From Takakia lepidozioides (lineage: Eukaryota > Plantae > Bryophyta), in NCBI GenBank assembly GCA_030704615.1, contig JAKLZA010000028.1:1-7197 (forward strand): a DNA stretch of 7,197 bases, read 5' to 3'. Shown in pieces: positions 1 through 5,036 of the stretch. Position numbers and translations under genes: made by a program. Every line of letters starts with the position of its first letter. The stretch's first letter is position 1. The notes below the pieces were generated by a model that was not told the DNA's origin, did no database searches, and saw only the letters and a list, made by a program, of their open reading frames with translations.

Positions 1-414
1 GTAAAAACACCAGAAGAGACTCCTCGGCGCCCACGCGTCTGTGAGGAAGTACGTATGGCGGCTTCGTCTTCTGTCGTCGGTCGTGTCACACCCTTCGTCG
101 TGGCCGGTTTTCGTTGACCTCGCTGAAGGGTTTCGGCCTCCCGTTCCGTACCAGAACCGGTTGTGGCGGGTTCGGGCCTGACTGTTGTGAAAGAGGTAGG
201 TGACGCAGCAGAACGGGTGGAGGGACCGGATACCTTCTGCTGCTTGCCGTTCCCGACTTTCCGCCAGGATTCGCCTTAGGCTTATAGCCGGTTTGGCCCA
301 AGCTTCTGGGCCTTAGGTTTCACCTGGAGGAATTCACCACCTTCTTCACCTCCTTGAGTACTTCCTTGAACCACCTAGCGTTTCACGAGGGTAGCAATGG
401 ACGGTTTCCACAAG
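1..414 (-). mobile_element. Same element, 5' part (ORF1 and frameshift region) of unit C, with noisy sequence
   Basis: Matches 3545-3946 with many small indels. Confidence 0.88.
194..254 (-). promoter_or_regulatory. Second, noisy copy of the frameshift signal
   Basis: Same stems are present. The heptamer reads GGGAAC (one A short) in a region full of indels. Confidence 0.6.
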
Positions 415-454
415 TTTAGGTATTTAGGGGTTTAAGGTTTAGGTTTAGGGTTTA
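415..454 (+). repeat. Telomeric tract (TTTAGGG) x ~5.5, degenerate
   Basis: tttaggtatttaggggtttaaggtttaggtttagggttta. Confidence 0.9.
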
Positions 455-532
455 CATAAAGCGTCCAAAACAAGTGTAGCAGTACAACGCGGATGCACGG
501 GTGGCAAGATAAAACACGATCCGGGCAAACAG

Positions 533-554
533 TTTAGGTTTAGGGTTTAGGGTT
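533..554 (+). repeat. Telomeric tract (TTTAGGG) x ~3
   Basis: tttaggtttagggtttagggtt. Confidence 0.9.
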
Positions 555-1234
555 GTTAGCAAAGGCTTGCAAAGGTAACAAAAGTAGAAAAATACTGGAA
601 AAAGACCAGTAAAAATTAAGGGGGGCCGGTCGGACCCAAATACAAATGCAATGGGAACCAAGACAAATGCATACAAAGTGCGCCTATCGTGCCTAAAGGG
701 ATGAAAATAAGACTATTATGTCTTATGCAAGGACTCCGCCCTCACGAGATAAGGTTCTCTAATTGAAGAATGAGGCACTTTCGTTTCAACCGTAAGCTTT
801 TTTATGTTTGCTTCTCCTTGTTTAGCGACAAAAAATCTTGCTCACTATGGGCAAGCATGCGCTCAAGGCACTCACAAACATAGGGTCAAGTCTCAACCCC
901 TAGTTGGAAAACTTATATGCCCCACCTTCAAAAAGAGGTTCGTACCTCTAAGGAAGAATGGGAGGGATTACCGCATAAGGTCATCGACGAGAAGGTTAGG
1001 TCGGCAGAGGCTTGCGCATGCCCATAGTCCTCTGATCGCTCGAGATGAACTCGAGGGAGGATCAACCAAATCCCTTCTCTCCGACCATCGGGCGTACGAC
1101 AGGGGGAACCGTGTGTAGTCGGGGCTAAATTAGCTTGCCCGACACGATTACCATATACCCCCAGCCGCCTTCCCCATTGTAAGCGGTGGCTAAGATGGCG
1201 TCAAACGGAAGGCTCTATACGCCCCGTGCTTTGG

Positions 1235-1244
1235 AAAGAAAAAA
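1235..1244 (-). terminator. Possible Pol III terminator (TTTTTTCTTT); unit B copy at 4768-4777
   Basis: First T6 run downstream of the USE/TATA. A weaker T4/T5 run lies at 1355-1358 and 4891-4895. Relevant only if the promoter is Pol III. Confidence 0.3.
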
Positions 1245-1365
1245 GGCCTCGGAAGTATCCAAGGGTTGGATTCCCCTCGGAGCGAGCACCCTTCGATCCA
1301 AGTTGCCCGGGCGGGCAAGGACTAGACTCTCGACTTCTCTAAATGTGGAGACACAAAAGAGTTAA

Positions 1366-1420
1366 GGTGTTTTATTCCAAACAAGTTTCGCTTGATTGTC
1401 AAGCTCATCAGTGGAACACC
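1366..1420 (-). ncRNA. Minimal type I hammerhead ribozyme
   Basis: Minus strand reads GGTG TTCCA CTGATGA GCTTGA-CAA-TCAAGC GAAAC TT GTT^ TGGAA TAAAA CACC. It has an intact CUGAUGA/GAAA core, a 6-bp stem II, a bulged stem I, and predicted cleavage after GUU between 1380 and 1379. Confidence 0.92.
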
Positions 1421-1452
1421 AAGAGATGAAGTCCTAAGAGCCAAGCCTATCC

Positions 1453-1498
1453 TTATATACTAGAAAAGCACCCTCACTATGTGCAAACGATATGGGAT
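1453..1498 (-). promoter_or_regulatory. Plant snRNA-type (type 3) promoter: USE plus TATA
   Basis: ATCCCATATCG (1498-1488) has 1 mismatch to the plant USE consensus RTCCCACATCG. It is followed by 28 nt and then TATATAA (1459-1453). The expected start is ~1427-1434, just before the hammerhead. Confidence 0.7.
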
Positions 1499-1672: not shown

Positions 1673-3790
1673 TCATCCTATCATTCTAGATTAACTAGGA
1701 ATGAACTCAGCTTTCGCGGATTCCTCCAACAAATCATCGCTCGAGGGAAGAAACCGAAGCTCCGGGACTTGCTGAAGCAACTCGTGGAGTCTAGGGTTTA
1801 GGGTGGCCCCCAAGTTCAAGGCTCGAGTGTACGAAGAGTAGTCGAGCTTAAGAACAAGGGGGGCCCGTTTACCCTCAACTGCGCGTTGCGTCTGTTGGTC
1901 GAGTAGTAGAGCGGATCTGAGGTCGTAGGAGATCTTGGTGAAGCAACTCCGGATGAACGCCGCCGGATAACCTCGGGCTCGAAGACGTTTGTAAAACAAA
2001 AGTCGCAAATGGTTGAACCCTTGGATGGTGCTTTCTCGTATTACGTACCGTTGGAGCTCGCCGATGACGAAAGCTTTCTTTTGGTGATGTGGATGCCACG
2101 AGGACCAAGGCAAGTATTGATACTTGTTCTGGGCTTTTGATGACATCTCGTAGAGAGCCGTCGAGTTTGGATGAAGTCGTCTCCTTTGAGGAAGGTGATA
2201 TCCAAGATGTCGGCGGACGTCGGGCTTATGGCGGTCGTGATTTTGATGCCATCGAACATGGAACCGTAGTTCCGTAACCAGGACCGGAGGCTCTTTTCGG
2301 AGCCTACCCAGATGCCAAAGCCGTCGTCGATATAGCGCTTAAGATAAAGCAGCTCTTGCTCCGATGGGCACACGTACTCCATGTACATCTCCAACCGACA
2401 GAGGAACAAACAAGCGTAAACAACTGCAAAGTTGCTCCCCATGGCCGTCCCGCGAATTTGGTGCCAAAAACTACCATTGAACTCAAGGTAATGGTGTTTC
2501 AAGACTAATCCAGCGAGGGTCATGATCAGGTCTTTTTTGTGTTTGGTGAAATTACCTCCAATAGCACATTCGAGCTCATACAAGCCGAGCTCGGTGATGA
2601 TGCTGGGATATAGAGATTCCACGTCAAACGTAAAAAGAAGAGCATGCGAGGGGACCTCGAGTTGGGAAACCTCTCGAAGAAGCGTGAGAGAATCAACCAA
2701 ATGAGTGGGTTCCTTGAGAAGTACCGGAAGGAGTTGGTGATGGAGCCAAATTGAAGCATGCTCGAAGATGTAGTTCTTGTAGGAACAAATGGGTCTTCCA
2801 ACAAGCACGGGTTTGTGCACCTTCGGAATGAAGTACAAAGCACAAGCTCGAAAGTCCGTGGACGACCGAGGGCGTTGGCGGATGTAATTCCATTCTTTGG
2901 TGGTGGAGATCGCAAACCTGTAGATTGGATGGCAAGCTAGCACCTCCAACCTCGACCAAAGTTCTTCCCACGGTACGGAATCCACGGGACGATAAACTTC
3001 GGTGTCTGAGAGTTGCCGCATCGCCTCTTGCATGTACCAAGACTTGTCCATAAGCACAAGACCAAGATTTTTGTCGGCCGGCTTGATGACAAGGTCCGGA
3101 TCCGACCTCAATCTTTTGAGAGCAAGTCTCAAGTGTCTCGGCAGACAAGGTCGTGCATTGCGGGGCGATTCGATCCAAACGGCTAGACAAAAGATCATTA
3201 CCTTCTCGAATGATGGCCTCGAGCGGTTGAGATTCCACTGGCGGATTGAATGATGGATTCGGAACGCGCCAAAGAGGAACCTCGTCGTTGTCTTTGCCGG
3301 AGAAGGACGTTCGCAACCTCAAGCTTCGAGCAAAATTGTTGAATTCGGTGATGATTGAAGATCGGGAAGGGGGAAGAGGACGAGGAATGTAATTGAGACC
3401 AAGGCCCAGGAGTTGTCGCTCCGCAAAGGAGAGAACCCTCTTGCTATAGTTGTGGATAGCAGTGTTGGTGACCCTGCATTCCACTTGGGAGGGAGTCTTC
3501 CTAGCAAAGAGCAACAAAGCGTAAGCCTTCGGGTCTACGAGCGGGTACCAAAAGAGACTCCTCGTGCGCCCCCGCGTCTGTGAGGAGGTACGTATGGCGG
3601 CTTCGTCTTCGTCGTCGTCGTCGTCACACCCTTCGTCGTGGCCGGTTTTCCGTTGACCCTCGCTGAAGGTTTTCGGCCTCCCGTACCAGAACCGGTTGTG
3701 CGGTTCGGGCCTGACCTCTTGTTGAAAGAGGTAGGTGACGCAGCAGAACGGGTGGAGACCCGGATACCTTTCTGCTGCTTGCCGTTTCCC
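1673..3790 (-). CDS. Penelope-like reverse transcriptase without endonuclease, ~700 codons, probably made as an ORF1-RT -1 frameshift fusion; split by apparent sequencing indels
   Basis: Joined from ORFs 2693..3517, 2041..3198 and 1691..2146. Motifs: IHNYSKRVLSFAERQLLGLGLNYIP (PLE N-terminus), KPADKNLG, LYFIPKVHK..GRPI, FTFDVESLYPSI (A), QIRGTAMGSNFA (B), RYIDDGF (C, YIDD at 2323-2334), ILDITF (E), YLPWSSWHPHHQK (thumb). The C-terminus read from unit B is ..FLPRAMxCWRNPRKLSSFLVKSRMIG*. The stop lies at 1673-1675 or 1681-1683 depending on a 1-nt indel. Confidence 0.93.
1792..1804 (+). repeat. 13-nt perfect telomeric match inside the 3' end of the RT coding sequence
   Basis: TAGGGTTTAGGGT, encoding TLNPR on the minus strand. 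Unit B (5329-5340) lacks one T. Confidence 0.65.
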
Positions 3791-3946
3791 GACTTTCCGC
3801 CAGGATTCGCCTTAGGCTTACTAGCCGGTTTGGTCCCAAGCTTCTGGGCCTTAGGTCACCTGGATGGAATTCACCACCTTCTTCACCTCCTTGAGTACTT
3901 CCTTGACCACTCGCGTTTCACGAGGGTAGCAATGGCGGTTCCCAAG
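3535..3946 (-). CDS. ORF1 (C-terminal ~135 aa, no start codon): amphipathic helix followed by a basic low-complexity tail; putative nucleic-acid-binding protein
   Basis: Absent from the ORF track because it has no start. Manual translation with two indel corrections near the 5' end gives GTAIATLVKRx-VVKEVLKEVKKVVNSIQV-PKAQKLGTKPASKPKANPGGKSGNGKQQKGIRVSTRSAASPTSFNKRSGPNRTTGSGTGGRKPSARVNGKPATTKGVTTTTTKTKPPYVPPHRRGGARGVSFGTRS*. The TAG is at 3537-3535. EN-minus PLEs typically carry a coiled-coil or basic ORF1 upstream of RT. Confidence 0.75.
3610..3625. repeat. (CGT)5 microsatellite in the ORF1/RT overlap; also at ~7137-7152
   Basis: Reads poly-Thr (ACG) in ORF1 and poly-Asp (GAC) in the RT frame. 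Confidence 0.8.
3729..3790 (-). promoter_or_regulatory. Programmed -1 ribosomal frameshift signal (G_GGA_AAC plus stem/pseudoknot)
   Basis: The heptamer GGGAAAC at 3790-3784 is in the X_XXY_YYZ phase of ORF1. After a 5-nt spacer there is a perfect 9-bp stem GCAGCAGAA/TTCTGCTGC (3778-3770/3748-3740). The -1 frame is the RT frame. Confidence 0.85.
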
Positions 3947-3994
3947 TTTTTTTTTAGGGTTTAGGGGTTTAAGAGTTTAGGGGTTTAGGGTTTA
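3947..3994 (+). repeat. Telomeric tract (TTTAGGG) x ~6, degenerate
   Basis: tttttttttagggtttaggggtttaagagtttaggggtttagggttta. Confidence 0.9.
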
Positions 3995-4070
3995 CATAAA
4001 CGCGTCAAACAAGTGTAGCGTACAACGCGGATGCACCGGGTGCAAGATAAACACGATCCGGGCAAACAAG

Positions 4071-4095
4071 TTTAGGGTTTGGGTTTAGGGTTTAG
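4071..4095 (+). repeat. Telomeric tract (TTTAGGG) x ~3.5
   Basis: tttagggtttgggtttagggtttag. Confidence 0.9.
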
Positions 4096-4902
4096 CAAGG
4101 CTTGCCAAGGTAACAAAAAGTAGAAAATACTGGAAAAAGACACAGTAAAAATTAAAGGGGGGAGGTTCGGACCCAAATACAAATGCAATGGAAACCAAGA
4201 CAAATGCATACAAAGTGCGCCTATCGTGCCTAAAGGGATGCAATAAGACTATTATGTCTTATGCAAGGACTCCCGCCCTCACGAGATAAGGTTCTCTAAT
4301 TGAAGAATGAGGCACTTTCGTTCCAACCGTAAGCTTTTTTATGTTTGCTTCTCCTTGTTTAGCGACAAAAATCTTGCTCACTATGGGCAAGCATGCGCTC
4401 AAGGCACTCACAAACATAGGGTCAAGTCTCAACCCCTAGTTGGAAAACTTATATGCCCCACCTTCAAAAAGAGGTTCGTACCTCTAAGGAAGAATGGGAG
4501 GGATTACCGCATAAGGTCATCGACGAGAAGGTTAGGTCGGCAGAGGCTTGCGCATGCCCATAGTCCTCTGATCGCTCGAGATGAACTCGAGGGAGGATCA
4601 ACCAAATCCCTTCTCTCCGACCATCGGGCGTACGACAGGGGGAACCGTGTAGTCGGGGCTAAATTAGCTTGCCCGACACGATTACCATATACCCCCAGCC
4701 GCCTTCCCCATTGTAAGCGGTGGCTAAGATGGCGTCAAACGGAAGGCTCTATACGCCCGTGCTTCGGAAAGAAAAAAGGCCTCGGAAGTATCCAAGGGTT
4801 GGGATTCCCCTCGGAGCCGAGCACCCCTTCGATCCAAGTTGCCCGGGCGGGCAAGGACTAGACTCTCGACTTCTCTAAATGTGGAGACACAAAAAGAGTT
4901 AA

Positions 4903-4958
4903 GGTGTTTTATTCCAAACAAGTTTCGCTTGATTGCTCAAGCTCATCAGTGGAACACC
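4903..4958 (-). ncRNA. Minimal type I hammerhead ribozyme, unit B
   Basis: Identical except that loop II is a GCAA (GNRA) tetraloop. Predicted cleavage is between 4917 and 4916. Confidence 0.93.
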
Positions 4959-4990: not shown

Positions 4991-5036
4991 TTATATACTA
5001 GAAAAGCACCCTCACTATGTGCAAACGATATGGGAT
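4991..5036 (-). promoter_or_regulatory. USE plus TATA promoter, unit B
   Basis: USE at 5036-5026 and TATATAA at 4997-4991, with the same 28-nt spacing. Confidence 0.7.

Follow-up and report, generated by a model that had tools for sequence, protein, structure and literature searches.

Why Penelope-like elements (PLEs) keep hammerhead ribozymes, and how telomeric PLEs without an endonuclease are transcribed, are open questions, and both are touched by the 7.2-kb stretch of moss DNA analysed here (the window). On its minus strand an 11-mer resembling the plant USE, a promoter element of U-snRNA and telomerase RNA genes, stands before a TATA box that points into a hammerhead ribozyme, downstream of an RT gene. 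An earlier note on this DNA proposed that a telomeric PLE had co-opted the SNAPc-dependent promoter class for this unit. The locus thus raises the question of whether the arrangement is a promoter, to which class it belongs and which RNA it would produce.

Organisation of the window

The window consists of two head-to-tail units of ~3.53 kb each; being ~99% identical, with differences that are mainly single-base indels, the two copies were counted as one event. On the minus strand each unit runs from a short C-terminal remnant of ORF1 through a Penelope-like RT, a spacer of ~190 nt, the USE-like 11-mer, the TATA box and the hammerhead to a 0.8-kb non-coding tail and degenerate CCCTAAA tracts. 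The features are collected in Table 1. Degenerate TTTAGGG tracts are found also at 3939-4094. Telomeric repeats in reverse complement are thus found on the 3' side of the element, and the same order was seen in two of the related loci described below (L003 and L021).

Table 1. Features of the two units, with positions counted from the first letter of the window
Feature	Position	Strand	Remarks
USE-like element ATCCCATATCG, unit 1	1488..1498	-	10/11 against plant consensus RTCCCACATCG (C7 to T); the host's own USE may differ
TATA box TATATAA, unit 1	1453..1459	-	First T 48 nt 5' of the hammerhead core
Initiator-like TTCATC	1425..1430	-	Predicted start A1427, 32 nt past the first T of TATA; block common to L005, L009 and L015-17
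Type-I minimal hammerhead, unit 1	1366..1420	-	Predicted cut 1380|1379; helix III ACTTGT, non-palindromic
T4 run after the ribozyme, unit 1	1355..1358	-	Possible Pol III stop; T5 in unit 2 and X1 contigs; position not conserved in relatives
Non-coding tail, 0.8 kb, from ribozyme to telomere-like tract	556..1365	-	Unlike ORF1 of relatives
Two short degenerate TTTAGGG tracts (414-455, 533-555)	414..555	+	CCCTAAA on the element's sense strand
Penelope-like RT reading frame, unit 1	1691..3517	-	Three overlapping pieces with two frame changes; no endonuclease domain; assigned from homologues
USE-like element, unit 2	5026..5036	-	
TATA box, unit 2	4991..4997	-	
Hammerhead, unit 2	4903..4958	-	One extra G in loop 2; predicted cut 4917|4916
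T5 run after the ribozyme, unit 2	4891..4895	-	

The RT had 208 homologues, and the best of these carried PF28514 and PF26215 and lacked PF01541 (GIY-YIG). The best named homologues came from Cryptomeria japonica, Selaginella moellendorffii and Ginkgo (46-53% identity); the RT of the window was 50-53% identical to the Cryptomeria copies and 52% identical to a Selaginella copy. The plant-type clade was supported at 100/99 on the RT tree. A Pfam scan of eight ORFs of the window, which hold the RT in broken pieces, returned no domain match. Because its RT homologues carry PLE-type domains and lack GIY-YIG, we regard the element as a plant endonuclease-less (EN-less) PLE; that it is a PLE had been assumed in the earlier note.

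The tail at 556-1365 was considered as a possible ORF1 and rejected. Searches by tblastn with the ORF1 proteins of five relatives gave nothing significant in the tail, and their only match was a faint one (E 0.5-3) to the ORF1 C-terminal remnant adjoining the RT. The two RT frame changes of unit 1 fall at ~2133 and ~3162. Contigs assembled from an independent run of the same organism (X1) vary in length by one base at exactly these points, so the frame may be uninterrupted in other copies or in the true sequence, and the indels of the window may be assembly errors. Antisense to the tail, open frames of 184 aa (4307-4861, plus strand) and, in unit 1, 104 aa (804-1118, plus strand) had no Pfam match and are probably spurious. 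The window copy may itself be decaying: its units are 5'-truncated and the helix III palindrome of its ribozyme is broken.

Within the module, the coordinates and spacings reported earlier proved right in both units: ATCCCATATCG on the minus strand, 28 nt, TATATAA, 32 nt and the hammerhead 5' arm. The two gaps of unit 1 run from 1487 to 1460 and from 1452 to 1421. Unit 2 showed the same arrangement, with the extra G in loop 2 and the T5 in place of a T4 run as the only differences, and an X1 contig spanning 1344-1672 showed zero base differences. A USE match with at most one mismatch was not rare when sought anywhere in the window (mean 0.32 per shuffle). It is the position of the match that makes it non-trivial, on the right strand and 28 nt before a TATA box facing the ribozyme; we estimate the chance of such a placement at ~1e-3. 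A Pol III-type start would be predicted at ~1430-1432, and an initiator-based start at A1427 would precede the ribozyme's first paired base by 7 nt. No listed run on record as RNA was found to contain the element, and two runs guessed to be RNA gave no contig on the stretch.

The hammerhead of unit 1 has its 5' arm (GGTGTT) from 1420 and its core (CTGATGAG) from 1411, and the motif ends at 1366. Helix II is formed by GCTTGA/TCAAGC (6 bp) and followed by GAAAC, and helix I has 3-7 contiguous pairs together with a distal GGTGTT/AACACC. The core CUGANGA ... GAAA ... UH was present with both helices, and the thermodynamic centroid fold contains helices I and II. Rfam gave only a weak hammerhead match when 121 nt were scanned (HH9, 16.9 bits, E 0.056), which did not reach the gathering threshold of 52, and no match over the whole window at E up to 1. 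A Selaginella copy scored above the gathering score of Hammerhead_1 (40.5 vs 34). Despite the weak Rfam score, the core, the two helices and the predicted fold of the window motif fit a type-I hammerhead.

Helices I and II covaried across 20 families. Helix III was a 6-nt palindrome in 19 of the 20 listed motifs of relatives, in one of four different forms (ACTAGT, ATGCAT, ACATGT or ACCGGT); the one remaining, L093, was parsed wrongly. The covariation in helices I and II and the four alternative palindromes in helix III argue that the ribozyme is under selection. A palindromic helix III is the mark of dimer-forming PLE hammerheads (PMC4209133). In the window, helix III reads ACTTGT at 1381-1386 and at 4918-4923 (minus strand), so the palindrome is broken in both units, and this copy of the ribozyme may be poor at cleavage.

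The TATA-ribozyme layout in related elements

To place the module in a family context, ~95 loci of relatives (L numbers in the text) were collected through the RT and lined up on the hammerhead core. A TATA box was found in 19 of the 20 promoter families of the plant-type clade, mostly as CCTATATAAA or CCCTATAAAA. Among ~20 diverged plant-type relatives (RT identity 41-66%) the first T of TATA lay 37-58 nt before the hammerhead core. The distance was 37-39 nt in the CT-rich clade, L012 and L028, and 45-58 nt in the remaining listed families, including the window (48 nt). Flanking sequence around TATA was unalignable between families. Non-plant relatives (31-39% RT identity) had hammerheads and no such TATA box.

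Downstream of TATA, the block TTCATC was found 29-33 nt past the first T in the window, L005, L009 and L015-17. The equivalent arithmetic for the CT-rich clade puts the predicted start at the first bases of helix I. The layout of TATA box and ribozyme was kept throughout the plant-type clade, in line with the earlier proposal of a promoter-like module facing the hammerhead, and this comparative evidence supports the promoter reading well.

Members of the CT-rich clade (L018-L046; for example L026 at 4088-4126) had (CT)n or C-rich tracts before TATA, instead of a USE. With TATA only 37-39 nt from the core, the predicted start in this clade falls at or inside the 5' arm of helix I, and transcripts from such a start may be without a complete ribozyme.

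Many relatives were tandem or circularly permuted, with contig end overlaps of 29-55 nt and periods of ~3.9, 4.08, 5.14 and 5.27 kb, and in these the module lay 0.2-1.3 kb 5' of the next unit's ORF1. Given this position shortly before the next ORF1, the module is most simply read as the element's own promoter. Driving the next tandem copy was one of two options offered in the earlier note, and the tandem and circular relatives fit it. Identical contig ends of 29-55 nt (assembler k-1) were seen in L006, L007, L009, L011, L014 and L096; these contigs are circular permutations of one 3.9-5.3 kb unit and represent head-to-tail arrays or circular molecules. In L007, one AAACCCTAAACC at 20-31 lies between the tail and ORF1 of the tandem unit, the position taken by the longer telomere-like tracts in the window.

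The reading we prefer, with a probability of about one half, is that 1453-1498 and 4991-5036 are the promoter of a terminal-repeat (pLTR-like) module of the element, made up of a TATA box with initiator and a USE-type element, and that this promoter drives the next unit.

The USE-like motif and the polymerase

The plant consensus USE, RTCCCACATCG, and its spacing rule have been described (PMC8287931, PMC9845283). In Arabidopsis, a USE-TATA gap of 23-24 bp corresponds to Pol III and one of 32-34 bp to Pol II (PMC8287931). Moss U6 promoters have a 25-bp gap, and in a published citrus U6 promoter we counted ATCCCACATCG, 26 nt and TATATATA, followed by ~28 nt to +1. The USE of the fern Ceratopteris is AAACCCACATGTG, and comparison with the angiosperm USE indicates CCCACAT as the deep core, with a 3' end that varies between lineages. 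The background given in the earlier note on the USE, its spacing and the kinship of PLE RTs with TERT agrees with the literature. Within the core common to angiosperm and fern USEs, the window variant, TCCCATATCG, shows a C-to-T departure.

In relatives, the motif read TCCCACAT followed by AC, TG or AT. TCCCAYAT was located 28 nt before TATA in the window and 21-22 nt before TATA in L005/L010, where the motif is present twice, and in four diverged sublineages of L009-L017, in which the flanks had changed and the 8-mer and the gap had not. A weaker GTCCCATAATC was located 29 nt before TATA in L006-8. Outside promoters, TCCCAYAT occurred 12 times on the sense strand per 111.7 kb. Some 0.03 families would be expected to carry it in a 21-nt interval before TATA, and it was observed in three deep lineages. 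On the RT tree the USE-bearing lineages were separated by path lengths of at least ~1.3 changes per column, and their patchy distribution requires at least 3 changes.

The USE was absent from L093/L094, the nearest relatives of the window with flanks (58-63% RT identity), although TATA and ribozyme were present; both share with the window an AGTGAGG..TTCTAG block adjoining TATA. It was absent also from L002/L011, L012, the CT-rich clade, L028/L096 and the Cryptomeria and Selaginella copies. Closer relatives were unusable for the flank, L001 having no 3' flank and L089-L092 no ribozyme in the contig. Conservation of USE and TATA in diverged members, a point raised in the earlier note, was seen almost throughout for TATA (19 of 20 families) and in part for the USE, whose core recurs in three deep lineages and is not family-wide. 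This pattern indicates that some families maintain the USE-like motif by selection, as a genuine cis-element, and that others can do without it.

An alternative identity for the motif, a class-I TCP site (GGNCCCAC), was rejected because it fits less well than the USE. We know of no other plant element that matches TCCCACAT equally well. In L005, ATCCCACATTG occurs twice at 3506-3534, the copies being 7 nt apart, and only the upstream copy gives the 22-nt gap to the TATA-like CATAAAAG.

The USE-TATA gaps were 28 nt in the window, 29 nt in L006 and 21-22 nt in L005 and L009-17. These values straddle the Pol III value (~23-26 nt) and fall well away from the Pol II class, by 5-13 nt. The gap of the window lies near the Pol III class and exactly inside neither class (28 nt vs ~23-26 and ~32-36), in agreement with its earlier description as intermediate but nearer Pol III. 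If the Arabidopsis spacing rule applies, SNAPc at 21-29 nt would predict Pol III, which is at odds with a Pol II reading.

One alternative is a Pol III type-3 mini-gene, which we consider unlikely. In such a gene the USE and TATA would recruit SNAPc, TFIIIB and Pol III, transcription would start at ~1427-1432 and stop at the T4/T5 run (1358-1355), and the product would be a 70-80 nt RNA of roughly the hammerhead alone, which would cut itself or serve in trans as dimer partner of the hammerheads in long transcripts. The gaps on both sides of the Pol III value are consistent with this, as are the T4/T5 run 27 nt past GAAA in the window, with T5 in unit 2 and X1, and a Cryptomeria family whose corresponding spacer holds a 5S-rRNA-like segment, 5S genes being a further Pol III type. 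The palindromic helix III of the relatives also fits, as hammerheads of this kind work as dimers (PMC4209133).

Several results argue against the mini-gene. T-runs followed the ribozyme by 4-122 nt in all families, with or without a USE; their position was unconserved and at chance level for T-rich sequence, and as a Pol III terminator signal they were set aside as uninformative. USE-less families kept the TATA-ribozyme geometry (L002 53 nt, L093 45, L004 45, L003 58), which suggests that SNAPc is not needed for the module to work. A TCA-type initiator such as the one conserved at +29 to +33 is typical of Pol II, and ORF1-RT has no other evident promoter. As to the full-length coding RNA, T5 runs 27-141 nt after the ribozyme would leave Pol III unable to make it. 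For this reason, and given the USE-less families with the same geometry, Pol II is favoured for the family-wide role. A search with Rfam over 131 kb of relatives' loci found no snRNA gene.

To the same degree, we doubt that the module is a plain TATA/initiator Pol II promoter, in which the USE-like 11-mer would be a chance match or the site of another factor and the snRNA resemblance superficial. This explanation would account for the absence of the motif from L093/L094, which are the nearest relatives with the AGTGAGG..TTCTAG block, for the one-base departure within the conserved core and for a USE-TATA gap outside both classes. It also draws on the frequency of USE matches at up to one mismatch per window, on the 12 sense matches of TCCCAYAT elsewhere in the loci and on the difference between fern and angiosperm USEs, which means that the host's USE may not match. 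It is difficult to reconcile with an exact 8-mer whose position with respect to TATA is constant between L005 and four diverged L009-17 members with changed flanks, or with a count of three deep lineages where ~0.03 families were expected.

The proposed co-option of the SNAPc promoter class is supported in one respect, the recurrence of the USE core at a short fixed distance from TATA in three deep lineages; against it stand a motif that is not family-wide, the C-to-T change in the core and a 28-nt gap outside both classes. An snRNA-type (SNAPc) promoter is a plausible reading of these sequences. The Pol III and telomerase-RNA angle is speculative, the link to telomerase RNA being the shared promoter class and nothing further. 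In its fullest form, which we find distinctly unlikely, a TERT-related, telomere-associated element would have taken over the type-3 SNAPc-dependent promoter class of telomerase RNA and U6; a hammerhead RNA of ~75-120 nt, made abundantly by Pol III, would be the trans dimer partner that licenses cleavage of long transcripts, and the Cryptomeria family would reach Pol III via its 5S-like insert.

Very improbable is a module that is no promoter at all, in which the TATAAA-like block would be a near-upstream poly(A) element ending the RT mRNA at a conserved CA ~30 nt further on, or the blocks would be RNA-level 3' UTR signals: the block does lie 190-250 nt past the RT stop codon with a YA dinucleotide 23-27 nt further, the usual range for plant poly(A) sites, but in every family the block reads TATA(A/T)A, with the C-flanked surroundings of a textbook TATA box, rather than as varied AAUAAA-like hexamers, the sequence before it is rich in C or CT instead of U or UG, its spacing from the ribozyme hardly varies (37-39 nt for eight diverged CT-rich families and 45-53 nt for others), a constancy that a poly(A) site has no reason to show, and in tandem units the block is directly 5' of ORF1.

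Proposed transcription and comparison with known systems

If the module is a promoter that serves the next unit, as we prefer, its TATA box and initiator-like TTCATC would direct a minus-strand start near A1427, 7 nt ahead of the hammerhead. Ribozyme cleavage at 1380|1379 would then remove the 5' leader and leave a 5'-OH RNA. In head-to-tail units, the module behind one RT gene is positioned 5' of the next unit and would drive it; here that unit would comprise the 0.8-kb tail, the C-strand telomeric tract, the truncated ORF1 and the RT. The ATCCCATATCG 28 nt 5' of TATA would act as a USE-type proximal element, probably bound by SNAPc. Some families of the clade would have kept this element, and others would have replaced it with CT-rich tracts. 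Pol II would make the family-wide 4-5 kb coding RNA, and USE-bearing copies could make added or alternative use of Pol III. Self-cleavage can promote cap-independent translation in plants (PMC13725137), which removes the objection that a cut RNA cannot express ORF1.

With a conserved TATA box that sets the start where the first ribozyme nucleotides lie, a testable model is at hand: the ribozyme would be transcribed first and would then strip off its own leader. It would be unusual for a retroelement to contain an external snRNA-type promoter, and an upstream USE and TATA would be heritable only through the tandem/pLTR layout. To our knowledge, the small-RNA promoters found in mobile elements (tRNA, 5S, 7SL) are internal, and copying of the RNA therefore includes them. 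Should SNAPc prove to be involved, plant telomerase RNA would have its promoter class in common with a retroelement related to TERT.

No description of a TATA or USE promoter 5' of the ribozyme in plant PLEs was found in the searchable literature, and the earlier suggestion that the arrangement is undescribed for a PLE holds to that extent. The only PLE promoter to have been dissected, as far as we know, is the internal, TATA-less one of Drosophila Penelope.

Compared with the type-3 promoters of plant U-snRNA and telomerase RNA genes, the module has 10 of 11 bases of the 11-mer, the same strand and order relative to TATA, a TATA box ~30 nt before the predicted start, a 28-nt gap close to that of U6 (~23-26 nt) and a short T-run downstream. 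It differs in its setting within a retroelement and in pointing at a ribozyme rather than an snRNA. It further differs in the C-to-T change in the core, in a gap that falls in neither polymerase class exactly and in a motif that is dispensable in sister families.

HeT-A is a non-LTR element of Drosophila telomeres. A promoter in its 3' part reportedly drives the downstream head-to-tail neighbour ('promoting in tandem'; Danilevskaya et al. 1997). As in the preferred reading of our module, a promoter late in one telomeric element would serve the next in the array; unlike the element of the window, HeT-A is of the non-LTR type, has an animal host and carries no ribozyme.

In the retrozymes of Nicotiana benthamiana, transcription from the LTR promoter begins 5' of the hammerhead, and cleavage yields an RNA that is uncapped and, with two repeats, unit-length (PMC9695139). 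Retrozymes thus share with the window a terminal repeat of a plant retroelement in which the promoter start, predicted in our case, lies just 5' of a hammerhead. They are, however, non-coding LTR-type elements with type-III hammerheads, whereas the element of the window is an autonomous EN-less PLE with a type-I minimal hammerhead. No mention of TATA was found in the retrozyme paper (PMC9695139).

Penelope of Drosophila virilis belongs to the same retroelement class, starts transcription in its pLTR and is supplied with an upstream copy by its tandem organisation (PMC2377424). In contrast to the upstream TATA box and possible USE of the window, its promoter is internal and TATA-less (Inr + DPE). 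The Athena/Terminon and Selaginella EN-less PLEs (PMC8557442, PMC4209133, PMC12477314) resemble the element of the window in their EN-less PLE RT, in telomeric repeats that run in reverse complement and in a hammerhead close to the 3' end. As described, their C-rich repeats adjoin the ribozyme directly, whereas 0.8 kb separates the two in the window. Term searches of PMC8557442 and PMC4209133 turned up neither mention of a TATA box nor a promoter 5' of the ribozyme.

A small-RNA-class promoter in the terminal repeat of a plant retroelement has a counterpart in the Cassandra TRIMs, whose LTRs contain 5S rRNA genes (PMC7215508; 10.1101/2023.07.14.548913). Being internal, the 5S promoter is copied automatically, whereas the USE and TATA are external and would be kept only via the tandem/pLTR layout. 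The Cryptomeria japonica relative L004 recalls Cassandra: a 5S-rRNA-like segment was detected in both of its tandem units, at 3767-3865 and 8106-8204 (Rfam 32.9 and 38.0 bits; gathering 38). The segment lies 65-75 nt past the RT stop and ~260 nt before the hammerhead, with T-runs between it and the ribozyme.
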